NCBI GenBank assembly: GCA_964035545.1
Contig: OZ037772.1
Span: 8,673,150-8,737,149 of the forward strand
From: Bugula neritina
Taxonomy: Eukaryota; Animalia; Bryozoa
DNA: 64,000 bases
Reading direction: 5' to 3'
Positions 12,701-58,779 of this stretch are shown one piece after another. The notes beneath the pieces were generated by a model. That model was not told where the DNA came from and did not search any database. It saw nothing but the letters and a program-made list of their open reading frames with translations. The position numbers and the translations under genes were made by a program. Numbering within the stretch: position 1 is the stretch's first letter; every line of letters begins with the position of its first letter.

Positions 12701-15700
12701 GTTATTAATCTACAATGAAAAATTCTAACTGAAGTTCAGCATAGACATGACTTTATGTATTCTCACAGAAACATAATTGGTTTCATGTTTACTTTCGACG
12801 AAAAGTCTACAAAATGGAATATTTTTGTAGATGGCTCAAACAGATGTGTATATGTTGGCTCAGATTTGGAGTTCACTTTATCGGAGTTGTCTCCCAACCA
12901 AACCGTTACATTTAGACTGAGAGCCTGTGTAACTGGTGATGAGTCACCATACAGTGAGTCTGCATCAGCTACTACTGAAGAAGATGTTCCTCAGCAACCT
13001 TCAAACCTAAGGCTATTAGGAAGAACTGCGACTATCCTAAAGATAGGCTGGGATCCTCCTGAGGATTGCTGTGGGGTTATCAAGGCGTATCATATATATT
13101 TAGGTAATAATATTTTTAGTTTAAATTAACTTCAAGAACTTTAATCTTTCTGGCCAGAAACTGTGACTAAAGTGCATGTCTTGCTACTTGTAAATGTGTA
13201 GGCATACTTGTCTAACTTATCTGAAGAATTCCCATGTTCCATTTTGAACATTTCTAACCAACATAAACTGTAAGGCAAGTAGTTTTATTTTCAATTCTAA
13301 ATTTAAATAAAATTTAAAAATTATTTTAACGTAAAAGTTAAAAATTCATATTTTAAAATTTAATAATGTTTAATTTTAAATGTATAAGTTTTAGAATGTT
13401 TTTGTTTCATTTTGTACTACTTGCCAAAATCTGAGTGAAAGTTTGATGATGGTATGGAACTGTGGTGATAGTTACTACTAGTATTACTATTTACTACTAG
13501 TACTACTATTTACTACTAGTACTACTATTTACTACTAGTACTACTATCTACTACTAGTACTACTATTTACTACTAGTACTACTATTTACTACTAGTACTA
13601 CTATTTACTACTAGTACTACTATTTACTACTAGTACTACTATTTACTACTTAGTAGCACATGTATTCAAATTATCTCTATTCCAGATAATACTCATGTGG
13701 ACCAAACCACGGAGTTGTCTTATATTATTTCTGGCCTCAAAGAGCAGACGACTTACAATGTTGGTATATGTGCTGCAACATGTAAAGGCAAAGGTCCTAA
13801 GGCTAACATAGACTGTGTTACTGCTGATTTAGGTATCCAAAAATTTAATTAAAAAGTTTAGTAAAATATAAAAAAACTTTAAATTTCTTTTAATTTGCAG
13901 CAAACTTTCACAAGGCATTAGCATATAAAATTATATAAATATATGATATTTTGTATATTGGGTTTTGTAAACTTGCCTTAGCCCATGTGAAAGTAATTGA
14001 AAAGCATTTGAACTCTATACTAATGTATAAAATTCTAGTTGATGTATTTAATTGACAATACTTTACTATTGGAATAACTTCTAGTAAACCGGGTCTTTCC
14101 CAAAAGTCTGTGTCACCAAGTCATATAAGTTGCTACATGTAGCTTAAAGTGATACTTTGTTGTCATGTTGCTAGGCGACCACTGCCCTAGTAAGCCCTCG
14201 CTAAGCATTATGGGTAGAAGTGAGATTAATGTCACATGGAATCCTCCTCAAGTCCCACTGGGGCGGATAACTCGGTATGACGTCTCAAGTAACGGCAAAG
14301 TCTTCTACTCGGGCACTGATCTCCACTGCACTGCTCGACATCTTCAGCCAAATACCGAATACACTTTTGTGGTGAGCAGAAAATATGTATCTGTGATGCT
14401 TTTTTATTTATAATGTTTATTTTATTGAAGAATTAATGCAGTCTAACCCACTATTTGAAACTGGGTCAAATAAAATAAGCAGTTATTGTACAAAGTTACA
14501 GTTTGATCTTATTTTTTGATATGTATACGTTAAGCTTACTCTTTGGTATGTGAGTTAAACTTTTTTTGTTGAGCATGTATTCAGTTTTAATTTTCCATAA
14601 AAGAACGTTGTGTTACCAACTCTGCATTATCTAGAAATGCAGAAGATTCACTGTCACCTCAGACTTTGTGTTTTATAGGTCACAGTCATTACTAATGAAG
14701 GTCCCTTAGATAGCAAGCCAGCCAAAAAGAGAACTGCCAAAGATGAATGTAAGTGTTGTTTGTTGAAATATTAAATTAACCAGCTAGCTGTCTCTACGCC
14801 TCATTGAGCTCTAGTCTCTACTATATGGTAATCATTACATTTTGTAAGCCTATGGCCACACGGTGCGTATTTTCGCATGCGAAAATTGAAATCACAAGTA
14901 GCAAAGGTGTCCACTGTATGCGTTGAGAAAACATTCGCACTTGTCGCTCAGCATTCTCAACGCAAGTGCGAATCGTCTCTGTCGTCGTCACCTAATTGGC
15001 TGATAGTTATTTTAGTGCTACATTCCAGGAAATTGCGTTTTATTGAAAGCAAGTGCGATTTAAAAATGAAAGCTTTATTTATCACGCATCACTGACGCTA
15101 CAGTGGACACCTTTGCTAGTTGTGATTTCAATTTTCGCATGCGAAAATACGCACCGTGTGGCCCTAGGCTAACTATACTATACTGTGATTCGATATGTAT
15201 GATAGTTTATTATTACTTTTATTACTAGATCTGGGTATTTTTGTAAAGTAATTAGTAGAACTTTTGGAAAGTTGTAGTTGTATTATCTATGACCAAGTTG
15301 AGTAATTAAGGGATCAACTTTGCATTGAGCTCTACCACCTCACTCATGTGGTAGTGATATAAAGTGTCAGTACAGCAGAGATAATTCATTCTTGTAACAC
15401 TTCTGCTGCAGTTGTGCCAAAGAAAAACTCCCACATGTTTAGAGTTACCATCCCTGTGAGAAAACGCTGATGGAAGAGATTTTTAAATCAGGCTATGGGC
15501 TTATTAAGATGAGACACAGGAGCAATTATGACTGGATGCTCTTCCTAACATCACCAATGGCCTTTACTGGGGTTCGAACCCATGACTTTGGGTTTACTAG
15601 ACCAAACTCTCTAACCTCTAGACCACGGCTGCTTTATTTCCTATTTATAGTTGAATAATATTTGATTCAGACGACTGTCAGAGACTCCCGCTCTACGTTC

Positions 15701-18273: not shown

Positions 18274-21200
18274 TTAGCTACAAGAAGGTAAAACATCAAT
18301 AAACACCTGTTTACTGTCTCTATTCACAGAGTAACACAAGTTAAAGTATTGTTTCGATTGAAACTTCTCTCTCATTACTCCAGCTACATCTGTTAGCAGA
18401 TCAACTAGTTCTACTCTCTGTACAGATGGAGAAGCACCTTCTAGTAGCAGCAATCTATGAAGATACTCGCTACACACCCATACGGGTGGCTCAGCGTCAT
18501 TTAGTATGTTGTCTATAGACACAGTAGGTTGATAGGGCCCACTGTTAGTAAGTTGAGAGAGGTAGTCGGAGAAATATTTAAAAAACTTTCCAGCTTTTGA
18601 TCTAAAAACATAAAAATAGTTACTTTAAAAAACTGCAGTTACAAAATAAATTTCCATTCAAGTTTAGAAAACTAACAAAGGATGCATGCTTGCAAAATCT
18701 ATAGGAGTGAGGTGTGGCATTCTAAATGCCCACCTGCTGACATGTGGCATAACCTCCTGCTGATTCATGTCATACTCACCTGCTGACATGTGGCAAACAT
18801 ACCGTGGTATACTCACCTGCTATCATGTACTACACCCACCTGCTGACATGTGCCACACCCACCTGCTATCAGGCAAAGTTGTGAAACAGACATAGCAGTC
18901 TGCTGGGAGGTCCAAAGGTTTGAATGTTGACCTTTTCCACTCTTCTTCTCTCTCTGTGTCAGGTAATACTTGCTCTGTTGGCTTGTAAAGAAGTTCTATC
19001 TCATTCTCTGGCCAAGGAAACTCATTGCTAGATTCAAAACTATGAGGAGCTCTGTTGTATATGGCTGAAATATCTCCTCTGCAGCAGGACAGGAATAGTA
19101 GCTGAAATGACCAACATGTGAGTGAAAGACGGAAGCACCAACTGAAAGGTACACAGTTTAACTCACGCAAATAGCTGTCATCCCTGCGAGAGACCGCTGA
19201 TAAAAAGGGGTTCTTTGTTAAATCAGGCTAATGTCTTATTCAGATGGGGCACAGGAGCAAGTATGACTATAGATGCTCTTCCTATAAACATCACCAATGA
19301 CCTTCAGTGGGGTTCGAACCCATGACTTTGTGCTCTAACCCCTATACCACAGTTGACTAGTATTTAAAAAATGCAATACAAAAACAGTACCTATACTTAA
19401 AGTCTTTATCCTCAAATTCGTTATAAAGCACAATCCAATTATTTGCACGAGCTGTATTAATTTTTAGTGTTTTATAATTATCTAAACGAAATATTGGTTC
19501 AATGATAAATTTGAGTAATTGACGATTACCTTTGGAATGGCTGTGACTTGACCTGAATTAAAGGTGTTGACCACTTCCTGTGTGGAGCATTTAGAAACTC
19601 CATCGTGTCCATAAATCATACCATCCTTGCCATGGGAAAAGACAACCAAGGCAGCTAGTGACTCATGCCCTTCTGATTTGGAGTACTGATATATAGAACT
19701 CAGCATTTCTTCTGCTGACAAATCTTGTTTCACTTCAACCTAGATTAATATTCAGAGATATGAGAAAAATGTAATATGCGCTTCTTGGAATGTCTTTTTA
19801 AACTTTGTTTTGTGATTATTATGTGTATACAAACTTTTATTAACCTATTTATAAGTTTTTATATCTCAAAATTCAAAAGTACAGAATATCTTAGCACATA
19901 TATAAAGGTAATACTCACAGAAAATCTCAAATGGTTAGTAAAAATCTTTTGAGCATGTGCAAGGGCTTCTTTTCGAAGCTGAGAGATCAGTTTCTCACCA
20001 TCAGTTGGATTATCAGACAGCCCTAAGTTGTTGCAGATGATTAAAGCTTTTCCTCTCTTTTCTTTGCTGGTATAAGAAGTTGCTACATCCTGTTCAATTG
20101 TTCCAGTTAGTTCTTTTTCAGCATCTCTATTAGCTTCATCATAAGCTGGATTCTGAACTACTCGACTGGATGGTTCAATTGCTACTAATCTATGAGTGTC
20201 TGTCAAGAACTTGGTGTCATCTGCTAAGAAATCATTTTCATCTCGGACAAATCTCTTGTTTAGAGTTGAGTTGACATCTATCTGTTGCACGTTGGGGTTA
20301 CAACTAAGTGCGACAATCAAATCGTGTATAGATTTGTAGCTCTTCATATCCGGCATTTGTCTTCTGAAATGTAGATTGACACAGATTTGTAATGTATATA
20401 TTTATATTCAACTGCATACTTAAGAGTAAAATGACCTAAATATTGCAGCAAAGCATTGCTATGTTATTTTTATATGTAAAGCTTTTTATGTAAAGCCTTA
20501 AGTTTCATTATTTCTATACTAATACGTACTACTATACGTTTCTCACCTATTCTCACCTACCCTGCTTTGTACTGTCCATGGGTAGCGGCAATCCTATACT
20601 ATTTTTATGTTGACATACTGTTGTAACATGTATTGCTACACCCTTTCTATTCTAAAATATTGCTGCTAAACATTGCTATGCTAAATTTTCTATGATAACA
20701 ACATTGCTATAACACATTGCTATATACTGTTTCTATATATATAATAACTAACACATTGCTATGCTATTTCTATGCCAAAACATTGCGGTAACACATGCTA
20801 TAATACCTTGTATAATCTCTGCTGTATTTTACAGAAAGTATCAAATAGTCAGGACCAGGGGGCATAAGGTCAAGTTCTTCATCAACAGCTGACATTTGTA
20901 TTACTGCTATCTAAAATACGACCAAACATTTTCTTTATATTGAAATTGAAGAATTAAGCTTTATTGTATCTGATCAGCAGTATAGTTACTAAATAAAACC
21001 AGCTTGTAGGTCTTACAATTATTAGATGTGACATGCATGCTATATGGACAACAAAATGCTTTATGAAAAGTTTCAGTGTATCAGATGCACTAATATTTCT
21101 CTTTGTGTAGGTTCCACTAAGTATAAATTCAAAATGCTTGTAAAATAGTAAAACATGCACAAATTATAGGAATTCTATTAAAAAATACAGTTCAAAAGCT

Positions 21201-23718
21201 TTTTATACAATTGTGAAAGATTTTAACTGCACATATCAGCATTTCAAAAGTTTTTTTGACAGTTGAATTCAACTTCCCTACCTTAGGCTTGCCACTGTAT
21301 CCAGGTACATCCATTTCATTAAGGGCAGTTTGTATGTTTGGCTGTTTGGGCTCACCAACCTTGTCAGTGTCTATGGCAACGAACATGCAATCATCTTCAA
21401 CTGGTGATGTCTAGCAGAAATAAATTATTAAAGCTGCATAAATCAATTTGATATATTACCTGCATGTATGTTAATTATAAAAACCATAAGAGAACAGAAA
21501 AAGAATATGACAACATTTTGCATTTCTACTACGAGATCTCGTATGTTTTTACCCAAATTGCAAATCTGAAGTGCAAGAACAATCTTCAAATTCAAACTTC
21601 TGTTTGGAGATTTAAATTTATAGTTGTATTATGCTAAATTATTGCAGATGTAGTATTAAAATATTAAAAGAAAATGAATTTCAAGATTTCACATTTAAGT
21701 TAGAGAGCAAAATCTTGAACTAAGTTATACTGATGCTGACAATAAAATGCTGAGAATAAAAAGATCTAGTGAATTTATTTTAAAGTTTGTGCAAAAAGGC
21801 GAAATATGGAATTTATATCTACCAAAGCTTTTGACACTTCAGTTTCGTTCACAGAAGAGATGACAGCCTGTTGAATAGCAACAGCTGAAGAGAATAAGGT
21901 GTCTGACGTCGTGTAGGCGAAGTCCAAAAGTGAGTATTCATTCAATGAGTACTTAAGTACTTTCAGGATAGTTTCATCGTATCTATATAGAGTTTCAGGA
22001 TGCTGCAGTTGATTCTGAAACTCTTTTGAATAAAAGAATATGATATCTCTATATGCTGAAAGTAGAGTCTTGTGTGTATTGTTGCAGAGAATTTTTTGCA
22101 TATAGAACTGTTCATGGAAACCTTTTCTCTTAATAATTGTTCTACAATCAACTAGTTGCACATTTTGTGAGTTTGCTATACTTTTTCTCCCTGATAAAGG
22201 AAGCTGCAATATGAAGTCAGCAAAAACTTTAGTGTCATATTTGGCAGCAACATAGTGAATTGGTGTGTTACCGTATACATCAGGGTATATCAGATTCTTA
22301 ACATCGGCGTAGTATAAATACTCTTGTAGCTCTGTATAGAGCTCATTGAGAGATGATGAAAGAGCTGCCAGATGTAAAATGTTTTGGCGATGCTTGTTAT
22401 GCTTTTGCATAAAGCTTCTGATTTTTTTGGCATCATAATTCTCCTCCATGTACAGTAGAACCTCTCTTAAAGCACTTGATCTTCCTAATTTGGTCAACAT
22501 CAGAATTGGTGTGTTTCCATCACTTACTTCAAGCAAAAATGTTTGTTCTAACAAGTCTGAATTTCCCACACCAAGAAGAATTTTAGCAATGGTAGCATTA
22601 TTTGCATAATGCAAAGGTATTTGAGCAAACACTATTTCTGCATCAATCTGAGGTAGTTTACAGAAATACTCTACCACATCACTTCTACCTAGATGTGATG
22701 CTAATAGCAATGGTGTTGTCCGAGTCTTATTAACAGAGATTATAAAATCCATTTGTCTTTCAGCTCGAACTGAATTCACAAGTAACTTTGCTATCTCCCC
22801 ATTAGCAACAAGATGTAGAGCTGTTTCACCAGACAAACCTTCCTTCAGAATCAGTTCATCGTCTGAATATAAACTACAGAGATACTGTACAACATCAGTT
22901 CTGCCAACAAAAGCAGCTCCATGTAGAACTGTCAGTTGATATGTATCTGCTGAATGTACATATTCCCTTTGTCTTTCTGGTGAAACTGCGTTCACAAGTA
23001 ACATGGCAACCTCTTTAGTTTTAGCAAAGAACAGAGCTGTTTTGTTATGGTTGTTCTTTTTTAGTACCAGCCACTCACTTGTTGAATGTAGACTACACAG
23101 ATACTCAACTACATCAGTTCTACCATTTTTGGCCGCTGTATGCAAAGCTGTGTTCTGCTCTACATCTCCAGATAGTACAAACTCTTCTTGATTTTCAAAT
23201 GCAACTGAATCTACTAGCAGTTTAGCTATTCTTTTATTCTTAGCATAATGTAAAGCTTTCCACCCATTGATATCTTGTTTTGCCATGAGCACATCATGGT
23301 ATGGACATAAACTACAGAGATATTCTACCACTTGATCTTTACCATCTTCAGCAGCTACGTGTAATGCAGTTCTCTGCTTAACATCAACTGCTAAGATGAA
23401 GTCTTCTTGTCTTGATGGTTGAACCGATTGGACAAGAACTTCCGCTATTTCTCGGTTTTCAGCATAGTGTAAAGTTGTCATACCTAATTTGTCTCGTTTG
23501 AGTATTAGTTCATCATCATTAGGATATAAACCACACAGATACTCGACCACGTCAGTTGTACCAAATATAGAGGCAGCGTGCAGCGCTGTACACTGGTCCG
23601 CGTCAACAGAAAATACAAAATCTCTTTGTTTCTCCTGTGGAACAGAGTTGACTAATGATTCCGCCATTGCTCGGTCTTCAGCATAAAGCAAGTCTGGCCA
23701 AATTCGTGAAACATCCAT
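18274..23718 (-). CDS. Ankyrin-repeat / pseudo-caspase / caspase (peptidase C14) fusion protein, copy A (~1116 aa)
   Basis: Coding exons (minus): 23718(ATG)-21823, 21410-21282, 20910-20807, 20363-19919, 19739-19530, 19101-18863, 18601-18274; phases 0,0,2,0,0,2 all join in frame. About 14 ankyrin motifs (TALH/TPLH type). Caspase signatures: KRGKALIICN, LVVFSHG (catalytic His), PK|LLFLSCCRG (catalytic Cys), LPADCYVCFTTLP (small-subunit start), GKFF. Probable non-coding upstream exon ending at 24256. Confidence 0.88.
18728..18870. repeat. ~23-bp minisatellite carrying splice-donor-like agcag|gtgrgt units
   Basis: 6 units in copy A; the equivalent array at ~30116-30370 has ~10 units. Confidence 0.85.
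19180..19352 (-). mobile_element. tRNA-derived SINE (family 1)
   Basis: Diverged copy: acaggagcaagtatgactatagatgctcttcc..catcaccaatgacc..ggggttcgaacccatgac. Confidence 0.7.
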
Positions 23719-24630
23719 TTTGATGTAGGCTGCAAAAACAAGTAATTGTTGCCACAAGAAATAACAAAATTGTTGGTTTTCAATGGTAATTTTTCATCAG
23801 ACTATGAACTTTGTGACTAATCAAACACATTCACAATATTTTTTGTATTGCAGTTTTTTGACATCATTATAATTCATAAACTTGAATTAATTAAAACTAT
23901 TAGCTGTGACAATAAGTAGGTTAAGTAACCATACAGTCTTCAAACCACGATAGACTCAATTTTAACTGCAGTAAAACACATAGGCCTACTGCGCATGCTA
24001 TGCTTGTGTTATGCTCTAGTGTATCTCTCACTCTCTCTCTCTCCCTCCCTCCCTCCTTCCCTTCCCTCCCTCCGCGCGCGTGCGTGCGCGTGAGCGCGTG
24101 TGTGTTGTGTGTGTGTTTGTATGTTTTGTATGTTGTAGGTGTGTTTGTGGATCCTTGTAAATTGTCATAATTATCAAAAACAGTAACAATTAAGACATAA
24201 AAAGTTATTGCAGTGATAAGCAACTTAAATATTATGTATTAAATTAAATACTTACTTGTTCGGTTATATTGAAATCAATATCATTTACTACGCTGTTCTG
24301 ACTACTATAGGTAAGGTACATAAACTGTTAGTCTAATCATCACGGAGCACTTCCACCTTGACTTGTACTACATTTCACTACTGTTTCACTATTGTAATGC
24401 CAACAAATGGCATCATATTGAGCCACAATCTCATTTATCATAGATTGTATAGTGCCTTTGTTCTCTTGTTGGTTATACAAAGCAAGACTAATAGTAGATG
24501 TATTTAATGGAAAGTAAAGGTGCAGCTATAGCTATACAACCAAGTTATTCAATAGCTTAACAAACTGATCAATGGGCTATACAAATAATACAATGTGGAA
24601 ATTCCAAGCAAGTGAAAACTGTCCTTTTTA

Positions 24631-24973
24631 GCCTAGGGCCACACTGTGCGTATTTTCGCATGCGAAAATTAAAATCACGAGTAGCAAAGGTGTCCACTGT
24701 AGCGTCAGTGATGCGTGGTAAATAAAGCTTTCATTTTTAAATCGCACTCGCTTTCAATAAAACGCAATTTACTGGAATATAGCACTAAATAAAAAAATTG
24801 GGCTCGCTGAATAGCTACCAGCCAATTAGGTGACGACGACAGAGACGATTCGCACTTGCGTTGAAAATGCAGAGCGACAAGTGCGAAGGTTTTCTCAACG
24901 CGCACAGTGTACACCTTTGCTACTTGTGATTTCAATTTTCGCATGCGAAAATACGCATCGTGTGGCCCTAGGC
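24631..24973. mobile_element. PIF/Harbinger MITE, same family, opposite orientation
   Basis: Same TIRs; TTA target-site duplication (24628-24630 / 24974-24976); ~21 bp longer internally than the 14848 copy. Absent at the matching site near 36280. Confidence 0.9.
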
Positions 24974-24979
24974 TTACAA

Positions 24980-25505
<526 letters not shown>

Positions 25506-25554
25506 TTCTACTTAGTAGGCAGTAGCACATGTATTCAAATTGTCTCTATTTCAG

Positions 25555-29660: not shown

Positions 29661-32243
29661 TTAGCTACAAGAGGGTAAAACATCAATAAACACCTGTTTA
29701 CTGTTTCTATTCACAGAGTAACACAGGTTAAAGCATTGTTTAGATTGAAACTTCTCTCTCATTACTCCAGCTACATCTGTTAGCAGATCAACTAGTTCTA
29801 CTCTCTGTACAGATGGAGAAGCACCTTCTAGCAGCAGCAATCTTTGTAGATACTCACTATACACCTTTACGGGTGGCTCAGCGTCATTTAATATGTTGTC
29901 TATAGACACAGTAGGTTGATAGGGCCCACTGTTAGTAAGTTGAGAGAGGTAGTCGGAGAAATATTTAAAAAACTTTCCAGCTTTTGATCTAAAAACATAA
30001 AAATAGTTACTTTAAAAAACTGCAGTTACAAAATAAATTTCCATTCAAGTTTAGAAAACTAACAAAGGATGCATGCTTGCAAAATCAAAAGGAGTGAGGT
30101 GTGGCATTCTAAATGCCCACCTGCTGAAATGTGGCATAGCTCCTGCTGATTCATGTCATACTCACCTGCTGACATTTGGCATAACCTTCTGCTGATTCAT
30201 GTCATACTCGTCTGCTGACATTTGGCATAACCTCCTGCTGATTCATGTCATACTCACTTGCTGACATTTGGCAAACATACCGGTTTACACGTTTCGTACC
30301 CATGTGGTATACTCACCTGCTATCATATCCTACACCCACCTGCTGACATGTGCCACACCCACCTGCTATCAGGCAAAGTTGTAAAACAGACATAGCAGTC
30401 TGCTGGGAGATCCAAAGGTTGGAATGTCGACCTTTTCCACTCTTCTTCTTTCTCTGTGTCAGGTAATACTTGCTCTGTTGGCTTGTAAAGAAGTTCTATC
30501 TCATTCTCTGGCCAAGGAAACTCATTGCTAGATTCAAAACTATGAGGAGCTCTGTTATATATGGCTGAAATATCTCCTCTGCAGCAGGATAGGAATAGTA
30601 GCTGTAATGAGGGAAATTTGAGTGAAAGACGGAAGCACCAACTGAAAGGTACACAGTTTAATTCACGCAAATAGTCATCATCCCTGCATGTGAGAGACCC
30701 CTGATGGAAAGGGGCTCTTTGTTAAATTGGGCTAAAGTCTTATTCAGACCGGTGACTGCATGGATGCTTTTCCTAACATCACCAATGGCCTTTATTGGGT
30801 TTGAACCCATGACTCCGTGCTTACTAAGCAAAAGCTCTAACCCGTAGACCAAAAATGCTTCCTATACACAATTAAAAGGTATTTAAAAATGCAATACAAA
30901 AACAGTACTCAAAGTATTTATTCCAAAGATCGTTATAAAGCACAATCCAACCAATTACATGAGCTGTACAAATGTTTAGTGTTTTATAATTATCTAAATG
31001 AAATATTATTTCAATGATAAATTTGAGTAATTGACGATTACCTTTGGAATGGCTGTGACTTGACCTGAATTAAAGGTGTTGACCACTTCCTGTGTGGAGC
31101 ATTTAGAAACTCCATCGTGTCCATAAATCATACCATCCTTGCCATGGGAAAAGACAACCAAGGCAGCTAGTGACTCATGCCCTTCTGATTTGGAGTACTG
31201 ATATATAGAACTCAGCATTTCTTCTGCTGACAAATCTTGTTTCACTTCAACCTAGATTAATATTCAGGGATATGAGAAAAATGTAATATGCGCTTCTTGG
31301 AATGTCTTTTTAAACTTTGTTTTGTGATTATTATGTGTATACAAACTTTTATTAACCTATTTATAAGTTTTTATATCTCAAAATTCAAAAGTACAGAATA
31401 TCTTAGCACATATATAAAGGTAATACTCACAGAAAATCTCAAATGGTTAGTAAAAATCTTTTGAGCATGTGCAAGGGCTTCTTTTCGGAGCTGAGAGATC
31501 AACTTCTCACTATCAGATGGGGTATCAGACAGCCCTAAGTTATTGCAGATGATTAAAGCTTTTCCTCTCTTTTCTTTGCTGGTATAAAAAGTTGCTACAT
31601 CCTGTTCAATTGTTCCAGCTAGTTCTTTTTCAGCATCTCTATTAGCTTCATCATAAGCTGGATTCCGAACAACTTGACTGGATGGTTCAATTGCTACTAA
31701 TCTATGAGTGTCTGTCAAATACTTAGTGTCATCTGCTAAGAATTCATTTTCATCTCGGACAAATCTCTTGTTTAGAGTTGAGTTTACATCTATCTGTTGC
31801 ACGTTGGGGTTACAGCTAAGTGCGACAATCAAATCGTGTATAGATTTGTAGCTCTTCATATCCGGTATTTGTCTTCTGAAATGTAGAGAAACAAGAATTT
31901 TTAATGTATATAATATATTAAACTGCATACTTAAGAGTACAATGATTTAGATATATTGCAGCAAAGCATTGCTATGTCATTTTTATATGTAAAGCATTTT
32001 ATGTAAAGCCTTGTTTTATTATTTCTATACTAATACATACTATACTTTTCTCACCTATTCTCACCTACCCTGCTTTGTACTGTGCATGGGTAGCGGTAAT
32101 TCTATACTATTTCTATGTTGACTGCATACTGCTGTAACATGTATTGCTACACCCTTTCTATTCTAAAATATTGCTGTTGAGCATTTCTATGCTAAATTTT
32201 CTATGATAACACATTGTTGTAACACATTGCTTATATATACTGT

Positions 32244-32333
<90 letters not shown>

Positions 32334-35300
32334 ACTAACACATTGCTGTAACACATTGCTATGCTATTTCTATGCCAAAACATTGCTGCAACACATGCTA
32401 TACCTTGTATAACCTCTGCTGTATTTTACAGAAAGTATCAAATAGTCAGGACCAGGGGGCATAAAGTAAAGACCTTCATCAGCAGCTGACATTTGTATTA
32501 CTGCTATCTAAAATACGACCAAAAACTTTCTTTATATTGAAATTGAAGCATTAGGCTTTATTGTATTTGATCAGCAGTAGTTACTAAATAAAACCAGCTT
32601 GTAGGTCTTACAATTATTAGACGTGCCATCACAGAGAGAAATATTAATGTTAGAGTGAACATTAGCTGACAACTGATCATGCATGCTACATGGACAATAA
32701 AATGCTTTATGGACAACTTTATTGTATCAGATGCACTAATATTTCTCTTTGTGTAGGTTTTATACTAAGTAAATATTCAAAATGCTTGTCAAATAGTAAA
32801 ACAATAGTAAAACATGCACAAATTATAGGAATCCTATATAAAACCAAAAGAAAAACACAATTTAAAACCTTTTTTTATACAAGTGTGAAAGATTTTAATT
32901 GCACATGTCAGCATTTAAAATGCTTTTTGACACTTAAATTCCCTACCTTAGGCTTGCCACTGTATCCAGGTACATCCATTTCATTAAGGACAGTTTGTAT
33001 GTTTGGCTGTTTGGGCTCATCAACCTTGTCAGTGTCTACGGCAACGAACATGCAATCATCTTCAACTGGTGATGTCTAGCATGCAGAAAGATATTATTAA
33101 AGCTGAGTAAACCAATTTGATAGTACCTGCATGTATGTTAAATATAAAAACCATAAGAGAACATAAAAAGAATATGACAACATTTTGCATTTCTACAACG
33201 AGATCTCGTATGTTTTTACCCAAATTGCAAATCTGAAGTGCAAGAACAATCTTTAAATTCAAACTCCTGTTTGGAAATTTAAATTTATAGTTGTATTGTG
33301 CTAAAGTATTGCAGATGTAGTATATTAAAATGTCAAAATAAAATAAATTTCAAGGTTTCACATTCAAGTTTGAGAGCAAAGTCTTGAACTAAATTATAGT
33401 GATGCTGACAATAAAATGCTGAGAATAAAAAGATCTAGTGAATTTATTTTAAAGTTTGTGCAAAAAGGCGAAATATGGAATTTATATCTACCAAAGCTTT
33501 TGACACTTCAGTTTCGTTCACAGAAGAGATGACAGTCTGTTGAATAGCAACAGCTGAAGAGAATAAGGTGTGTGAAGTTGTGTAGGCGAAGTCCAAAAGT
33601 GAGTATTCATTCAACGAGTACTTAAGCACTTTCAGAATAGTTTCATCGTATCTATATAGAGTTTCAGGGTGCTTCAATTGATTCTGAAACTCTTTTGAAT
33701 AAAAGAGTGTAATATGGCTAAATGCCGAGAGTAGAGTCTCGTTTGCATTGTTGCAGAGAATCTTTCTCATATAGAACTGTTCATGGAAACCTTTTTTCTT
33801 AATAATTTTTCTACAATCAACTAATTGTAAATTTTGTGAGTTTGCTATACTCTTCCTCCCTGATAAAGGAAGCTGCAATATAAAGTCAGCAAAAACTTTA
33901 GTGTCATACTTGGCAGCAACATAGTGAATTGGCGTGTTACCGTTTACATCAGGGTATATCAGATTCTTAACGTCGGCGTAATATAAATACTCTTGTAGTT
34001 CTGTATAGAGCTCTTTGAGAGATGATGAAAGAGCTGCCAGATGTAAAATGTTTTGGCGATGCTTGTTATGCTTTTGCATAAAGCTTCTGATTTTTTTAGC
34101 ATCGTAATTATCCTCCATGTATAGTAGAACTTCTCTTAAAGCGCTTGATCTTCCAAATTTGGTCAACATCAGAATTGGTGTGTTTCCATCAATCTCTTCA
34201 AGCAAAAATATTTTTTCCAGCAGTTCCGAGTTTCCCGCACCAAGAAGAATTTTAACAATGGTGGCATTATTTGCATAATGCAAAACTGTAGATCCATCAG
34301 CTGTTTGAGCAAACAGCAACTCTGCATCAATCTGAGATAAGTTACAGAAATACTCTACTACATCACTTCTACCTAGAAGTGATGCCATTTGCAATGCTGT
34401 TGTCTGAGACTTGTTAACAGAGAGCATAAAATCCATTTGTCTTTCTTTTCTGACAGAATTCACAAGTAACTTGGCTATTTCCCCATTAGCAACAAGATGT
34501 AGAGCTGTTTCACCAGACAAACTTTCCTTTAGAATCAGTTCATCGTCTGAATATAAACTACAGAGATACTGTACAACATCAGTTCTGCCAGAATAAGAAG
34601 CTGTATGTAGAGCTGTCAGTTGAGTTGTATCTGCTGAGTGTACGTAGTCTCTCTGTCTTTCTGGTGAAACTGTATCTACAAGTAACATGGCAACCTCTCT
34701 AGTTTTAGCAAAGAACAGAGCTGTGTCATTATGGCTGTTCTTCTTTAGTACCAGTTGCTCGCTCATTGGATGTAGACTACACAGATACTCAACTACGTCA
34801 GCTCTACCATCCTTGGCAGCTGTATGCAAAGCTGTGTACTGCTTCACATCTTCAGATAATACAAACTCTTCCTGCTTTTCAAACACCACTGAATCTACTA
34901 GCAGTTTAGCTATCCTTCTATTCTTGGCATAATGTAAAGCTTTCCACCCATTGATATCTTCTTTTGTCATGAGCACATCATGGTATGGACATAAACTACA
35001 AAGATATTTTACCACTTGATCTTTACCATCTTCAGCAGCTACGTGTAATGCTGTTCTCTGTTTAACATCAACTGCTAAGATGAAGTCTTCTTGTCTTGAT
35101 GGTTGAACTGATTGGACAAGAACTTCCGCTATTTCTCGGTTTTCAGCGTAGTGTAAAGTTGTCATGCCTGATTTGTCTCTTTTGAGTATCAGTTCATCAT
35201 CATTAGAATATAAACCACACAAGTACTCAACCACGTCAGTTGTACCAAAGACAGAGGCAGCGTGCAGAGCTGTACACTGATCAGCGTCAACAGAAAATAC

Positions 35301-35405
35301 AAAATCTCTTTGTTTCTCCTGTGGAACAGAGTTGACCAATGATTCCGCCATTGCTCGGTCTTCAGCATAATGTAAATCTGACCCAATGCGGGAAACACTA
35401 TCCAT
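29661..35405 (-). CDS. Ankyrin-repeat / pseudo-caspase / caspase fusion protein, copy B (~1122 aa)
   Basis: Exons (minus): 35405(ATG)-33492, 33075-32947, 32507-32404, 31875-31431, 31251-31042, 30601-30363, 29988-29661. Same exon sizes as copy A (129, 104, 445, 210, 239, 328) except the ankyrin exon (1914 vs 1896 nt). FSHG and SCCRG are intact. Confidence 0.88.
30678..30855 (-). mobile_element. tRNA-derived SINE (family 1)
   Basis: ggatgcttttcctaacatcaccaatggccttt..gggtttgaacccatgac. Confidence 0.7.
32247..32330. repeat. (TA)n microsatellite
   Basis: Expanded relative to the short TA run near 20735 in unit 1. Confidence 0.95.
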
Positions 35406-36999: not shown

Positions 37000-39900
37000 T
37001 TAATGAGTTGAGGGTGGTTTTATTGAGCTCTTCACAGCTAACTTTCTTTTATTTCTCTTTTTATTATATAATATCTTCATCTGTTTCAAACGCTTTGACG
37101 TTTCGCTAACTCTCCGCTCTTGCAAACATGCTGTAACAATAGGATATTATATTTTTACGTAACAACCAACATGCAACCAAAAGATGCCGATTGTAATGTC
37201 GGTATATCTTATAAAAAAGATCGTTGAAAATAAAAATTTTTAATTATGAATAATATACATCACAACTTTTAAATTTATTATAATTATAGTAATTGTGAGC
37301 CTTTTACTCTGTTTAGTCAACCGTTGGGGAAAAGTCGCTAAATAATATAAACTTTCTCAACTTTTAGTTCTCATTTAATAATAATTCACTAAAAAGTCAA
37401 TTTAAACTATTTGCTTTAAATTTTAGTGTTTTGTAGTATATTTTATATATAATAAACTATATATCAAATCTTGCACTATATATACTATAGTATATTATAT
37501 TTTGTATATATTATAAACTTTATAGTGTAATTTTTATTATGCTAATTTTTTCTTACAATATAATTTATATTGAATTATATGTTATGTTTTAGTATATTAT
37601 ATATTATTACAAATTTTAGTATACCGTACCATAATATTATATACTAATTGCCTATTAAATTTGTTTGCATTTTGTAACAGACTATAGCATGCATTTACAT
37701 TATAAGTTATATAAAATATATATGGTATATATATATAATATAAATATAGAAATTAATATAATATAATTTATATATAATATATAACATATAATTACAATGT
37801 ATGCATATATATAATATAATACAGTATAGTAAAACTTATAATAATTGTTTTAAATTATGCATATTGTATATTATATGTTGTATTATACTATTGCATATAC
37901 TGTATTTATATTACAAATTATGTATTATTATATATAACTGTATGATGAACTTTGACTCACCTATAACTAGTAGTCTTAAGCAATGGACCATTATGAAAAT
38001 GTTTAGAAATACAGTCACAGTAAAGAAAATAAATGCCAACAGCTCGCTCAATTTGATTGATTCCTCAATAAATAGCTGAGCTAAAATGAAAAGAAAAAAA
38101 ATTTGAAATATAAAACTGCTATTCTTATATAAAATAATGAAGCAAAACATAAGGAGATATACAAAAAATGCTTAAATTTATTGATTAATGTTTTATTAAT
38201 AATTCTCTATAAAACAATATTCAATACTTTTAATTAGAATCTTGAAACTCTAATTTATAATTTGGTTTGAAGATACTTTTATCTAAAAATTAAATTATAG
38301 ACAAATCAATTTTTACAATGCTATTAAATGCCCCAATATGCAATACAAAATAGAAAAATAAAGTTATTTTTCTTGTTTGCTTTTGCATTTAGTTATACTT
38401 TGGCTTGATTTATATCAATTGTTTAGGTTCTTAACATGGAAAAGTTTGGTTTGTGACTATAATTTTATTCTAAACGTATATTTAATATAATTTTGTATGA
38501 ACCTTACTTTTGTTGGATATAGTCAATTCATAGGCAGTCGTATCTCCTAAGACGTACACCGTTACGTTATGCATGCCTTCTCTCTTAACAAAATTCTTCG
38601 GGGAAGTAATTTTACAAATGTCAACTGTCCCATTTATCTCCGTGCTCTTATTGTATTGCGGGATGCAAATAGAAGAAATAAATAAATTTTTTAGGTCGAC
38701 CAATCGAATAGTTTTACTTCCATAGTCAGCCAATAAAAATGTTTCGTCGTCTAAAAAGAGTATATTTGAAAGTTTTTGAACACTGGCAGTTTCGAGCAAG
38801 CCATCGCTATGGAAACCTTTAGCATAAACAATATCTTGTATAGCTGGGCTATGAAAAGTTGATTTTATTCTTGATATGGAGCTCTCTGTTTGCAAGTAGA
38901 GATAATTCCCAGATATGTCAAACGTAATTGCCTCAATCATTTTATCCCAATACAAGATGGTTTTGACACGATTTGTATCTAAGCACAGGCAGCGCAAAGT
39001 TTGCGACCCGCTGTCATAAATTAGTACTTCGCTCAAATTTCTCGGATTCAGAATTAAACCAATAGGAAAGAAAAACAGAGCCCTGGAGAAACTTCCGTCT
39101 CTTCTGCCATATTTAAAGCAAGTGCCAGCAATTGTTGAAGTAACTAAGTTTATCCGATTCAGCTTTCTTATGCAGCTGTAGGACTGATCTGAAATCCATA
39201 AAGTTTCATTGTATTTCGGGAGAGTTAAAAGACCAGATATGAGGCCGAATCTTGCATCAGTAGATGACCCATCAATATATCCATCTTCGGAGGAAATTCC
39301 CGCCAAATGGTGGAAAACTGTAAAATTGTTTGTGGTGTAAATAGCGTACCCAATCACAACTAGGAAGTTGTTTGCAATGTACTTATCGTCAGAAGCGTAA
39401 GTGAATGGCAAGGTTGATTGAAGGTTATGAATTTTTGTTACTTGTGTGAAATTCCATCTACAAGTAATATATTACACTGCATGTATATAAAATATGTTAT
39501 CTTTGATATATTATGGGCCTGACTTGGGTCAAACTTTTTGATTGAAATAAAATTAATGTTACATTTAGAATCATTTAGAAACTTAAGTATTGCTTATATG
39601 TAATAGTGCCAGTAAATTAGGTTGTTGATGCATATATGTACTAGTGAAAATTAAAATTAATAAAAAGCAAATATAATATGGGGCAGACAAAACTGATGCT
39701 GTATAGTTCAACCAACATCAGTGTTCTCTACTTCGTATAATATTTGCTTTTTATTAATATTCTCATATCACTGTCGAGTTATAAATAGACAAACAGTTTT
39801 TGCTTGTAAAAAAAGACAACCTAATTATTGTTGAAGCGAATACAGCAATTGACTTAGCAAAATACCAAACTTAAAACAAATAACTGCATTGATATTACTA

Positions 39901-41835: not shown

Positions 41836-44800
41836 ATGGAGTCCCTAGTTATCAGAATATTCAGGGTAGGTAAGAACAAATCTTTCAAAATCTTGGTTAC
41901 AACATTTATATATAAGTAACACTTTAATTTAGGCAGTAAATGTGAGAAATTGCATATACACTTCTTGAATAAGCTGTATAGCATGCATATAAAAGCTGAC
42001 TTAAAACATGTAGAAGTAAATAAAAAAAATATAAATATATTTAAAAAAATCTCACGGTTGTTTAAAGTTGTTGTATCTGTAAAGGTTCTATTATAAATGC
42101 AAGTAGTTTTAATTGCCTGTGCTTTTGAAATTATAAATGCCCTTTATTGGGTTGAAGATCATAATTTAATTATGATAATTATAGCTGGATGAGGCCATAA
42201 GCTACTGAAAAACAACTAATTTTTATAATACTTACCTATATATAGAAATAGCATATAATATTTTGTTTACATTTTTTTACAGAAATATATTTTCCTGATT
42301 ATTGTGATGACACCTCAATGTGATTCTGACTTTAGAGCTTCCTACACTGTGATACGCAAGTAAGGCAATGGAAAGTGATAGTTATGGTTAGCTCAAGCAA
42401 GCTATAACCAGGGTTGGGGCCAATTACAGATGAATGTAATTAATTACAATTACATTTACATGAGAATTTGTCAATTACAATTACAATTATAATTACAGTT
42501 GAAATAAATGTAATTAATTACAATTACAATTACATGGTAATGTAATTAATTACAATTACAATTAATTTTTTTCTTACAAAAGACAGATACAAATTATATA
42601 ACTAGACTTCTGTAGTCTAACTTCCAGAGGCAATTTTGACAATTGCAAGCTTTCTTTGTTCTCAACAGTAACAAATAGGGTGATCAATACAACAATAGAT
42701 TAATCTGAACTTTTTATTGGGTAGTAGGAAAAGCTGGAAAAAGATGAATTTTATAAGATTTAAAAATTTGAAGTAATTGTTATGTAATTATAAAGTTATT
42801 GCAAAATTCAATTACATTAGCAATGTAATTAATTACAACCAATTACAATTACAAATTACAATTACCCCAACCCTGGCTATAACTATCACCGTCATTGAAT
42901 ATTGTTCTTTTTATACTTTTTCTGGTAAATTTTAACAGAATAATTATCAAATATAACTATACAATTAAAAGAAACTCAAGTCACCCTCTGAAAATTTTTT
43001 CATAAGATTAGGTTATGTTTGAAATACTGCCGCAGTGTTAAATATTGTGATGTCATTAAAAGTATAAACTAACCATTATCTAACTCTTTTAATTAAAAAT
43101 TATTTTAGAATAAAGTTTGGATTATCTTAAAATAGTTTTTTGATACTAAACATATTTCATCATGCTCTCCAACAAATATATTTTGGTTTGGGCATTACAC
43201 AAATGCAAATAAAAGAAAAAATATCAAAAACTGTTTTTAAAACTTGAGAATAGTAATTTTTTTAAACTAATCTCAATTTATTCTTTCTTGATCAATTATA
43301 TTTGTTTAATTTCTTTTCTTTACAGCACTAAGTTTCATCCACTAGAAAAATTTGCTGACTTCAAAGAATTCCTTGAACGTTATAACAGACCAATTTACTT
43401 CTTCACTAAAGATGACTACATAAAAAATGAATTCATCGTCGCAGCTGGGTTTGGAGTTTTTACCTCGAGGAAAGTCGTAACGCTTGCCCGTCTGGCTGGT
43501 AACTTTGTGGAGAGTGGTAATAGAAATGGAGAAAGGAACTATGCAAGATTTCGCAAAATAAATGGAATAATAACCAATCCGTATGATAAATCAAAGATAT
43601 GGGTTATGGACTCGTATAACTACTGCATTAGAGAAATAAACCGCAGAACTGAAGTGACTTCTACACTCACAGGACAGTGCGGAATTACTGGTCATCAAGA
43701 CGGTGAAATAAAAGACGTAATACTAACAGAGCCGGTGGCTTTAACCGTGAGGCCAAATCAAGCGGAAAATGTTGAAACATATTTTTACGATAACGGAAAT
43801 TTTCGCCTGAAAACCTTAAAAAAGACAGGAGTGCTATTGCGAGTTCACACGGTCATTACTTGGAACAGAAAAATTAACAGCCTGTGTTTTGACCCGTCAG
43901 GAGACGCGCTATACTTAGTGTATAATACGGGCATAGGAAAACTGGTGCTTTCAGGAGTTGCCCAACCTGCTTTAACAATTTCTTTTGAAACTAAGTACGG
44001 GTTTTCAGATGGGCTTCTAAATAAGGATGCTAAAGTCAAGAGGCTAACAAGCATGGCTTTTACTATAAACGGTTTTATTATATTAACGGATGAAGGCAAT
44101 AGTGTGATTCGTGTGCTGGACTCAAAACGATGGGCGTTATCTTCTATCTGCACGACAGGAAGACAGGGTGATGATGTAGCTGGATTACCAACCGTCTGCA
44201 GATTGAAGTATCCAAAAAACTTATTATCAATTGGAAATGGAAAGATACTCATACTGGGTAGAAGCGCCATTTTTGCTTTGCGACTTACGGGTAAGTTATA
44301 TTGTTGAAATATCTTCACATTTTTAATGCAATTTTTAACAGAATAACGTTTTTTGTTTACAACAGCTTGAAGCAATTTTTAAACAGTTCTAAAATGAATT
44401 TTTGTTTTCAAAATTAACACAATGTATTGGCAAACATTCTAATTATACCTACATTAAAATTTTCTAATCAGCTAAAAATGTATCGAGGTTTCAAAGATTG
44501 TGTTTATGCAATACTAATGTTTTTAACTTTCCAAAGTTAGTATGCAGTTCTAAAGCTTGTAGTCTACACTCTAAATTGGATTTATACTGTCTGTAATTAG
44601 TGTAGTGTTGCCCATTATGCTATTAAAAAAGCAATCATTATTTTAAATTTGTATATGTGTGGCAAAAAAGCTTTTATACACCACTTTTTGCAGGCTGCTT
44701 ATAATTAAAACTACATAAAGTTTTATACCATAAAACATTATTAATTTTTTTGGCTATGTTGTAAAAAAATTAAAAAGTAAACCATTACATTAGTGAATAA

Positions 44801-46263: not shown

Positions 46264-49200
46264 ATGGAACTTTTTAACCTTAAGCTATTTTTGGTAAGTG
46301 AATGAATGTAATTGATGTATGAAATTGAAATACATAATGTTAAATAAATTATCAAATTATTAACAATAAATTATTTGCATGCTGTAATTGCTGTTGACTT
46401 GAATGTTTTATAAAATAATGACATATGTAAAATGAAACATGCTAATTTTTTATTATTTATAAAATATGCTTGTTTTAAACATTATATATTTTGTGAGAAT
46501 TATAATATAGCTAATGACTTGCTCTCACCGTGACAGCAGCGTAATATGTATAATCACTGACAGAGAGTTGAACTACAAATCTTGTAGTGAATCCTAGGCC
46601 ATTGTTTTTCACGCAACTATTTTTGAATCAAAACACAGCTAATCCTCATTTGTCTTCCTATAAAACAATTAGATCATCTTTGTTAAATTAGTACACACTC
46701 GGAATCTCCAGTTTTTAGCTATTTTGTTCACAAGTTAGCTGCTATAAGCTAGTGCATATATTATTTTTGCTCTAAACTAATAAAGTATCAATAAAAGTAG
46801 TTCTAAATTATTAAGATTGTTTTTAATTTTGCTTGATTTCTTATTATGTTTTTTCCTAATATTAGTTTTCGAGCTGGTCTGTAAATCCAAACTAACTCCC
46901 AGTTACCTAATTGCCTATAAATGTAGAATATATATTGTGATTTGTATTTAATACAGAAATGTATTTTACAGGTCATGATAATGATATCTCCATCCAATAA
47001 CTTAAAAATCTATCACACAATTCTACGAGAGTAAGAACTAAAATGAAATTTTAGCATAATCACATAAATTTTATCATCATATTTTTATTTTTTATGCAAA
47101 AATTTACGGAAGTTTATAATTGCCATCCTTATGATGGAAAATTCAATTTTGAGTACATTGCTCTAACTTAAATAGTATCATATTTATAATATTCAACAGT
47201 ATAAAATTAGGTTTTTCACTGGTTGAGTTGAAACTTTCAGAGTTCTTTTGAAAAAAATTGCTGAAACTTATCCTAAAAAACTCACTCATTCTGTTGAACT
47301 GCATGCTTACAATAAGCCTTCTAAACCAATTTATATAAAAGTTGCTAATAAAGAAAATGAAATAAAACTTGAGCTATAAAAATATGCCCTACATGTTGTG
47401 AAACGCAATTAGGCGAACTTTATGCAAATTACAAATTGTAAGTGTATTTTACTTAGGAACAGTAATCGAAAAAATTGAGAGGGCCCAAGTTCTTTATATT
47501 TTATTACTAAATTTTGGTTTGAGGCGCCGTTTGAACTTTGTGCGAGAACATAACTTCTTTTGCCACATTTATAATCTATAGAATATACTGCTTTTTTTAA
47601 ATTTCTCCATTACTGCATCTACCTTGTGGATTTAAACGGTATTTTGCTTCTTGTTTCAGCACCAAGTTTCATGACGTGAAAAAAGTTGCAGACCTCAAAA
47701 CTTTTGAAGATTTGTACAAAACCCCAGTTTACTTTTCAATCACAGATGATTACATAACAGGCCAGTTCTTAGCAGTAGCTGGATTTGCGGTCTTCACCAC
47801 CAAAGATTTTGTAGACTTTGAGTCTATAGCTGGGAGTTTGGTGGAAGATGGTAATGCAAACGGAGAGAAAGGTTATTCTAGATTTGGCAGAATAGATGGG
47901 ATATTGACCAACCCATATAATAGTTCAAAAGTATGGGTTGCAGACAGTTCTAATCACTGCATTAGAGAAATAGATCGTGAAACTAACATTACTTCTACGT
48001 TTGCAGGACAATGTGGAATTAATGGTCTTCGAGATGGAAAAATAATTAATGAAGCATTATTATTAGAACCTGTAGCGTTGACTGCCAGGCCAAACAAAAA
48101 CAATCAAGAGTTATATTTTTACGAAAATGGAAATACACGAGTAAAAACTATAAAAATGACAGGAAAAGAATTGCAAGTTCATACTGTAAATATTTGGGAC
48201 CGAAAAATCTATAAAATGTGTTTCCATCCATCAGGAGATGAGCTATATTTGGTGCTGGATCGGAGGGTATGGAAACTGACTATTTCAGGGGTTGTCTTGC
48301 CTGTAATAACAATTTTATTCGAAAATAGGTATGGGTTCTCAGATGGAGTTTTTGATCGTGATTCCAAGGTAACAAAACTGACAAGCATGGCGTTTACAAT
48401 AAATAGCGAGCTTGCTTTATTGACGGATCTAGAGAATAATCTTATTCGATTACTTGACTTGAAGCGAAAGGAGTTGTCCTCCATTTGCAGAGGTAGTAGA
48501 TATGACCTAATTGATAAGGCTGGAACCGCAAGCTCCTGCATCTTGATAAACCCAAAACATTTATTTCCAGGGACAGATGGCAAAATCTTTATGATGGGCG
48601 AAAATTCTATTCTTTCGTTGCAGGTTACAGGTGAGATAACTTTTTTTAAATTTTGCAAAAAGTTTAGAATAGGTTTTAGCTGCGCTTGTATAAATTGATA
48701 AGAAAAGTTCTACCCTAAGTTTTTTATAAACGTTTATTTCATTAAAAAAAAATTATTTTTGATTTTTAGTAAAAGTTGTTAAACTGAAAACCATAAAAAA
48801 ATTAAAATTTTAAGCTATTTTATAATTGTAAATGTAAATTATATTTTTTCTGTTGATGTGGCTGTATGTTCAATGCAATCACAGCAATTCTAATATATTC
48901 AATATATTATCTTGACTGCCTTAAGACTTTATTTATGTAAAATAATTGCGCCCACTAAGATTCGAACCACAGACCACCGGCTTGCAAGCAAACACGCTAA
49001 CCAATTATGCTACAGGGGCTTCGGGATTCTAAGCAAAAATTTATATAAGAAATCAAACACGTATAAATTTTTTTTAAAGATAACGATGAGATGCTTATGG
49101 AGCCAAATCAGCCAAATTTTGTAAACATGTTTTTTGTAGTTGTTTAAATTTTTACTACTATTTTGACAATAAGCAGCGTTCATTGATAATAAGGTTTAAA

Positions 49201-50007: not shown

Positions 50008-53000
50008 ATGATGCCTTTAACAAACCATTTTATTTCTATTTATTTGGTGAGTATTAACTCGTGAAGCAATAATCAAAAAGTACATTAATATGAAGTTGAA
50101 AATTCTACTCTTAGATATACAGTATGTTTGTTGATATAGACTTAACATAAAGCTTATATATTATAAACACATAACTGACTATAATATACTGATTTAAGAA
50201 CATTGTTTTGCACAATCTATGCTGAAAAGTATATACAGTATAAAATATTTTTATGCACTAGCTTTATTACAAAATGTTTACTACTATAATATATTATATT
50301 ATAAACAAATATCAATTTAAAATATAATATCTTATTTTGAATTTAAAAAAATTACGGCTATGTTATACTAAACAGATTTTACGAGTCAAGTATGATTACT
50401 TGCAATAAAATTTAGGTTTTTTTTACAAAATAAATAAAATAATTTAGTGTGTATTTTTAAATTTTAGCTGAATTAAAATAAAATTAATTGTTTTTCTCAA
50501 TTGTAGCATAAAAATGCTTTATTGAAAATATTTACACAATCATGTTGCATCATGACATGTTTTACGTTTACAAATAATTCTGTCGGATCAAATCTTTTTT
50601 GATATCTGTAGCTGACTCTTCACACTATTGAAGAGTTGTAATCAGCAATTAATAATTGTTGCTTATAAAATTAATAAACTGCAGCCAGTGAAGACATAAT
50701 GTTGTGTGTAAATATAAAATTACTGTTGCAACCAACAACTAACATAACATGAATGGTCACATCCAGTAAAATTCAGTTATAAGCGTTAACTTTTTTGTTT
50801 ATAAAATGCCTTATGGCTTTAGATAAGTTTTTTAATATGAGTACCCAATTTAGTGCTACACCGTTAATAAGCTAATATTGGAATAGTTTTTGTATATATT
50901 TCATTATATACTAATTAATATTATATATATACATTTATTTTACATGCAGGTTGTCGCGTGGAGCAACACATGTGCAGCTGTGGGTTACGTTTCTTACATT
51001 AATAAAGTACAAAGGTAAACTTCTAGTACATTCTATAGAACTTTTAAAATAAACATTTTTTTCTTTTCATAACTTCCTTGAAATTTGTACATAATTAATT
51101 ACTTATTTACGTTGTTGTACTTAATTTTTAGTTGCATAATAAAAATGTCCTAAACTTATTAAAAAAAACTCTAAATCGGTCAATATCAAACTTTTTTAGC
51201 ACTACCTGGTTTAACATTAGTAACTTTTGGTATTCTGATTTTCCATAGTGTGGTGGTGCACCTTAGCTGGTTTTCAACTTAGAAGACTGTTGTTTTGATT
51301 TATGATGAGTGGAGGGGCGGGCAGTAGCCTATTTGTTAAATAATTTCAATTTTTGAAAGATGATATATCACGATTTTTAAAAGCCTCTATCATTAAAATT
51401 TAGTCTCTTGAAAATATTATATTTGTCTTTAGTCCTTAAAAATGATGCGTAATAGTTTTATATTTGCATGGAGATAAAAGCTTGTATAATGCAATTGCAG
51501 CAGATTTATTTTTCGTTATTAAGTTCATTATTTTAAAAACTGCTTTATCTAAACTCATAAAATGATGCTGCAAAGATGAATTTATAAAATTTTACCTCTT
51601 TTGCAATGTTTAAATTGTAGTTTTGAATTTAACGGTGTCTCAGTGTTTACTAAAACCGATTTACTACAAGATAACGGGTTACTCCGCTACGTAACCAAAG
51701 ATGAGTTTGTTGAAGGAAACTTTCTAGCTGTTGTTGGCTTTGCCATTCTAACAACCAAAAACTTCACAATGTTTCACCTAATAGCGGGGCAATTTGAAGA
51801 GAGCGGTTATCAAGATGGTGTAAGATCAGACGCGAGGTTTGGCAGTATAACAGGGATAGTAAGCTCACCAGATGGCGCTAGTAAATTGTGGGTGGCGGAC
51901 TTCTCAAACAGCTGCATTCGGCTAGTAGACATGGTGCATTATGACGTGTCAACGTTTGCGGGTTACTGCACACATCAAGGTAACAGAGATGGACATGTAA
52001 GGGTGGCGCTGCTGTTGCTTCCTATTAGTATCATCCAATGGCCTAGAAACTCCACTACAGTCTTCTTTTATGATAACGGTTCGGAAAATCTTCGATTTTT
52101 TCAGAAGTATGGAGGACTATGGAGGGTGTTTACTAGAGCTCGGTGGAACAGAAAAATACAAAGCATGACCTTTGACACAGTGGGAGACTACTTGTATCTC
52201 ATATCTGACAAAGGGATAGGAAAATTGTCCTTTTTGTCAAATGCTAAAATCATTGAAGAAATTTTCTTAGCAACATCAGGAATTAGCGATGGGAGAATAG
52301 ACGTAAATGGAAGTAATGTGGCAGAAGTTAAACAGATGCAAGATGTAATCCCATTAGACGATGATCTACTTTTGATAGCAGATTACGGGAATAGTAATTT
52401 ACGATTATTTGACTTGAAAAATTCTCTAACCACAACGATTTGCCTTTCACAAGTTGACGCTGTCAGGCAGGTGACTCAAGATGTTAGCTCATGTAAAATT
52501 AACAAGCCAACAAAATTTCTCCAAAAAAGAAATGATAGCTCCAAAATTTACATATTAGGAAAAGAAGCTATTTATAACTTATTGTTTGTTGGTGAGTAGA
52601 TTTACTTTTCAGTATCTGTAACCTTACATAGTTGTACTTGACTTGTTGCCAAATGTCAACAGGTATTCTCAAACATTGACAAGCATTGTTAAGTACTGTT
52701 AAGTTGCCATTTGAATTGAAGCATAGAGCACTCATATTATAAAACTGTATATACATTTTGCTTATAATTATATTTGAATAACATAATTGTTTACTGAAAT
52801 TTATAAATGTTACATCGTTAGTGTACATATTTTTTTTCTTTATTTATTTATCGTTTTATATATTTATTTATTCAAATATTGACACAGAAACAGATAGTGT
52901 TTCAACAACAACAACAACAATGACTACTACAATACCTAAACTAACAAGTGCTGCTAACAGCTCAACTCTAGTAACAAGTACTTCAACCTCTTTTCCAATG

Positions 53001-55164: not shown

Positions 55165-58779
<3,615 letters not shown>

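Follow-up and report, generated by a model that had tools for sequence, protein, structure and literature searches.

A probable half-caspase remnant ahead of the active caspase in ankyrin-repeat proteins of the bryozoan Bugula neritina

What lies between the ankyrin repeats and the caspase encoded by two neighbouring genes of the bryozoan Bugula neritina? The genes sit on the minus strand of a 64,000-nucleotide stretch of contig OZ037772.1 (positions 8,673,150 to 8,737,149; the window, in whose coordinates all positions below are given), within a tandem duplication of ~11.5 kb whose copies, A and B, are 86–91% identical. An earlier interpretation made from the letters of the DNA, here called the sequence-only reading, proposed that the intervening region hides a second, catalytically dead caspase domain, acting in the manner of cFLIP as a partner of the active one in the same chain. 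We found that the gene encodes an ankyrin-repeat array, a helical connector, a conserved module of ~115 residues that lacks the catalytic His and Cys, and a complete caspase. The module, called the remnant below, is very probably the strand-3-to-strand-6 half of a caspase, which arose from the gene's own lineage and has since been trimmed of strands 1–2, helices 1–2, the hairpin after the His and one small-subunit helix.

A conserved module between ankyrins and caspase

The two genes and the parts of copy A are as follows.

18277..23718, minus strand: copy A gene, 7 coding exons, 1115 residues, no internal stop, GT-AG introns
23718-21823, 21410-21282, 20910-20807, 20363-19919, minus strand: copy A coding exons 1–4
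19739-19530, 19101-18863, 18601-18277, minus strand: copy A coding exons 5–7
22198..23718, minus strand: ankyrin-repeat array, residues 1–~507 (Pfam Ank_2, E 1e-42)
21823..22197, minus strand: helical connector, residues ~508–632, modelled as helices with a predicted local distance difference test score (pLDDT) mostly under 60
21282..21398, minus strand: remnant in exon 2, strand 3 (His lost), helix 3 and GKPK, then a phase-0 intron
20807..20910, minus strand: remnant in exon 3, strand 4 (IAVIQ), a short linker, PPGPD and strand 5, then a phase-2 intron
20243..20363, minus strand: remnant in exon 4 (part), a single helix plus strand 6 (V..V.VNSTL.K.F), the strand at which caspases dimerise
20057..20242, minus strand: variable linker, residues 751–812, within the exon that also encodes strand 6 of the remnant and strand 1 of the active domain
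18277..20056, minus strand: complete caspase (C14) domain, residues 813–1115
19640-19629 (SHG) and 19089-19075 (SCCRG), minus strand: catalytic His894 and Cys935 of the active domain
29664..35405, minus strand: copy B gene, identical 7-exon plan, 1121 residues
31755..33063, minus strand: copy B remnant, exon parts 33063-32947, 32507-32404 and 31875-31755, 92% identical to copy A

All five peptides on which the sequence-only reading was built were found in their places on the minus strand, and splicing at the six GT-AG introns of each gene yields a stop-free protein in both copies, copy B sharing the layout of copy A as had been proposed. Three of the six exon joints (21410/21823, 19739/19919 and 18601/18863) are present in contigs of two probable RNA sequencing runs from one sample, and exon 4, which joins strand 6 of the remnant to strand 1 of the active domain, is whole in such contigs; these were placed on the gene at 85% likeness and represent diverged alleles or paralogues. 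Stretches of introns 1–3 are left empty by the contigs of these two runs, whereas a third run does cover them.

In the predicted fold, the remnant spans residues ~637–750 and shows only strands 3 to 6, the half of a caspase that forms the dimer face, its match starting at residue 110 of caspase-6. Strands 1–2 with their helices were not found in it, and it also lacks one helix of the small subunit and the hairpin that would follow the His. The remnant is therefore not a complete six-strand domain of the cFLIP (CASc*) type, and the dead domain of the sequence-only reading survives as a dead, probably caspase-derived module, but as a half domain rather than a whole one beginning at residue 555. 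The loss of both catalytic residues was borne out across the 15 modelled genes (copies A and B and 13 paralogues), none of which has a His after strand 3 and most of which carry Ser at the Cys position (Ser682 in copy A). One paralogue, L044, has a Cys at the remnant nucleophile position, its His still absent (L044:5174-5278).

The remnant is as conserved as the large subunit of the active domain, with a ratio of nonsynonymous to synonymous substitution (dN/dS) of 0.27. Its conserved motifs are DDCMFVAID, GKPK continuing across the intron into IAVIQ, PPGPDYL, and V..V.VNSTL.K in strand 6, which is near-invariant; the first three are the cores of peptides that the sequence-only reading had aligned with caspases (DDCMFVAIDTD, VPGYSGKPK with IAVIQMSA beyond the intron, and PPGPDYLIL). 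Its other two peptides lie in the helical connector and did not hold up as caspase motifs: the columns of IIFFYSKEF are only 11–31% conserved in 55 homologues, and the stretch containing VISSVNETEVSKAL has 23% identity, no invariant column and a length ~30 residues shorter in three distant homologues. The connector profile scored 16 against the active domain (shuffle maximum 20.7), which is chance level, and the proposed strand-1 and strand-2 registers were rejected on this score and the unconserved columns. The connector does carry a conserved KVLKY.LNEY helix; reading this as caspase helix 1 plus strand 2 likewise scored as chance, and no strand in the predicted models and no caspase likeness were detected in the connector.

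The C-terminal domain, by comparison, passes the PF00656 cut-off, has the full six-strand fold and keeps its His-Cys dyad in all 15 modelled genes. Its nucleophile motif is S-C-C-R-G (S-x-C-R-G), not QACRG or QACxG, and the Gln of the S1 pocket is replaced by Ser, the positions of the two arginines being uncertain. A long insertion after the Cys is conserved (53% identity; nucleophile motif and insertion noted at 19027-19089, minus strand). Within it, an aromatic-Glu pair is invariant 16 residues past the Cys, and Glu951 is a candidate non-Asp processing site.

Evidence for a probable caspase origin and internal duplication

To place the remnant, we combined fold, profile and intron comparisons, with folding runs performed on the public paralogues P0016 and P0100. 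Foldseek returned caspases as the best matches of the predicted fold (E 0.025), in agreement with the structural expectation of the sequence-only reading for strands 3–6, although not for residues 508–632, which came out as low-confidence helices. The best PDB match by sequence was caspase-1 (E 0.25), and a remnant profile compared with the gene's own protease outscored 150 of 150 shuffles. The same family in the same register is indicated by the searches with sequence and fold, by the profile comparison with the gene's own protease and by the intron position, and the four motifs stand in caspase order. Several observations weigh against a caspase origin: each single test lies below usual thresholds, DegV-like folds score as high as caspases in the fold search, Pfam gave no match for the remnant either by exon or in pieces of public paralogues, and atlas and library searches were also blank. 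PDB searches with a single sequence or a long profile returned chance matches only, and the untrimmed remnant profile was not significant against the gene's own active domain. An ESM feature match to caspases (0.85) was discounted, as the isolated piece gave no caspase and the signal may stem from the active domain of the same chain. No one test proves a caspase origin; with several in agreement, we consider it well supported.

The introns bear on how the remnant arose. A phase-0 intron directly after PK occupies the same codon in both halves (21282 and 19530) in 15 of 15 modelled genes, exactly as had been proposed. More than 50 other caspase loci of the genome span this point within one exon, so that this intron is no common feature of caspases in Bugula; sharing of this family-specific intron therefore favours duplication from the gene's own lineage, as the idea of an internal duplication had it. 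The second intron that had been paired (20807 and 18863) agrees in phase (2) and loop but not in position, lying 14–17 codons past the strand-5 Asp in the remnant versus 12 in the active domain, thus 2–5 codons off. Both introns are kept in 13 of 13 modelled paralogues, two of which have one extra linker intron, and the remaining introns of remnant and active domain show no correspondence. At the PK intron of paralogue L038 (L038:2952-5557), a GC donor is apparently used; in the model of this gene, the small subunit of the active domain is missing its first helix, perhaps through a gap in modelling.

Within the family, the trees of remnant and active domain are largely in agreement, P0101 (EB796_004314) being an exception: the remnant of this protein falls with L036 (97/97), but its active domain with the L040–L045 group, which points either to recombination of the gene or to a public model that was joined wrongly.

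How the remnant may act

Strand 6 is where two caspases join, and cFLIP-L regulates caspase-8 by standing in for its second protomer (PMC7586951). Because the half that survives in the remnant is the one turned towards the other subunit of a caspase dimer, we tentatively propose, as a reading somewhat short of an even chance, a single-chain pseudo-dimer in which the remnant docks onto the active domain and regulates it. Strand 6 of the remnant would pair with strand 6 of the active domain of the same chain, giving a pseudo-dimer with one active site; the occupied dimer face would block adaptor-driven homodimerisation and damp resting activity, and the active site would become coupled to whatever the ankyrin array binds. 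The cFLIP-like intramolecular heterodimer of the sequence-only reading is plausible and has a precedent in coral caspase-X (PMC4715348), but we infer it rather than observe it, since the two-domain model gave no confident packing (predicted template modelling score, pTM, 0.38; no chain aligned across both domains).

The tandem of a dead and an active caspase is itself already known from Acropora caspase-X, a single chain with an inactive caspase domain ahead of an active one. Killing by caspase-X rose when the first domain was removed, and its interface was modelled at strand 6 (Moya et al. 2016, PMC4715348; Shinzato et al., PMC7783167). Like the Bugula proteins, caspase-X has an N-terminal caspase-like part without His and Cys and expanded by tandem duplication, its strand-6 pairing being modelled as similar to that of cFLIP and caspase-8. 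It has, however, two recognisable C14 domains in 721 residues with no ankyrins mentioned, whereas the Bugula proteins have one C14 stretch only, and their dead module follows an ankyrin array and is a half domain that Pfam does not detect. Separate origins are likely, judging from profile matches, because all 83 matches of the remnant profile looked like members of the ankyrin-caspase family; no full-length caspase was among them. cFLIP-L, in turn, is a protein of its own that carries tandem DEDs and an entire pseudo-domain (PMC7586951), whereas the remnant is truncated, in cis and without a DED; C. elegans CSP-2 and CSP-3 are also separate proteins that act in trans and lack ankyrins. We class the Bugula proteins neither as cFLIP-type nor as caspase-X, since they show neither a complete pseudo-domain nor two detectable C14 domains, yet they may work similarly.

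Closest in layout and remnant size are Csx29 and separase, in which a helical-repeat region is followed by a pseudo-protease of ~128 residues and then by an active caspase-fold protease, the two protease parts sharing one sheet (bioRxiv 10.1101/2022.08.17.504292). They combine CHAT/C50 with TPR, where Bugula combines C14 with ankyrins, and they are not among the fold matches of the remnant, so that the likeness is one of analogy only. A broader reading, which we regard as doubtful, is that bryozoans independently evolved a single-chain sensor-protease, convergent with separase and Csx29, in which the ankyrin array controls the caspase through a half-deleted pseudo-protomer, as a monomer without CARD or DED adaptors and perhaps without Asp specificity. 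Only the architecture and the gene-family expansion suggest a role in immunity or cell death.

Alternatively, the caspase-derived remnant could now serve as a hinge between ankyrin cap and protease, or as a docking surface for a substrate or partner, with the canonical dimer strand unused. Half of the fold is gone with a conserved helical segment in its place, the insertion after the active-site Cys could form new contacts, and the lack of confidently predicted packing speaks for this reading; the half that was retained is nevertheless the dimer face, and an unpaired edge strand would not obviously be kept near-invariant, which makes this unlikely. A use of the dimer face in trans, with remnants pairing with each other or with the active domain of the next chain into oligomers that replace a CARD/DED platform, has a similarly low probability: the conservation of strand 6 is equally expected, full-length members contain no CARD, DED or death domain, and the linker of 40–149 residues between its flanking motifs among paralogues (19% mean identity) would permit swapping, but in distant homologues only ~25–30 residues separate the ST motif from strand 1 of the active domain, a short linker that agrees with a fixed arrangement in cis. 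An unrelated small alpha/beta domain resembling a caspase by chance, intron included, would fit the sub-threshold tests, the equal DegV-like scores and the blank searches, and is highly improbable given the agreement on family and register described above.

If the remnant is a partner in cis, it would define a minimal part of a caspase sufficient to regulate another caspase, and a second route to a self-contained pseudo-dimer besides coral caspase-X. Standard annotation misses this module completely.

The gene family and its surroundings

At least 19 loci of the genome belong to the family, 16 matching the intervening region and 3 more matching a distant homologue; every named relative is a protein of Bugula neritina, with identities reaching about 90%. 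The public proteins P0100, P0101 and P0118 carry the full layout of an inactive and then an active caspase part. Homologues found in other samples, which share no more than 40% identity with anything in the Bugula genome and probably come from other bryozoans, keep the ankyrins, the PK motif with the following intron, PPGPD and the strand-6 motif, as well as active strand 1 wherever the contig reaches it. In the literature searched, which is itself incomplete, we found no description of a bryozoan ankyrin-caspase family and neither the truncation of the dead caspase nor its fusion to ankyrins. The family is an expanded, adaptor-free one, and genes for cell death and immunity have been little studied in this colonial animal. 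Genome-wide, at least 179 PF00656 matches, with clusters on contigs 1, 6 and 7, indicate that caspases have expanded very strongly.

Within the window, intron 5 of copy A contains a dispersed repeat of ~150 bases (19179-19330; copies at 15449, 26801 and 53297) with very high run depth. Between the gene copies lies a long AGT/GGT triplet repeat (24974-25525), adjoined by an inverted repeat (~24628-24979) that also matches 14842-15172. Further along, a tandem array (38482-61675) holds six similar long open frames of 310–375 residues, some of which give weak NHL or beta-propeller matches.

38482-39411, minus strand: tandem-array frame 1
43288-44307, plus strand: tandem-array frame 2
47676-48698, plus strand: tandem-array frame 3
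51601-52599, plus strand: tandem-array frame 4
56628-57755, plus strand: tandem-array frame 5
60704-61675, plus strand: tandem-array frame 6
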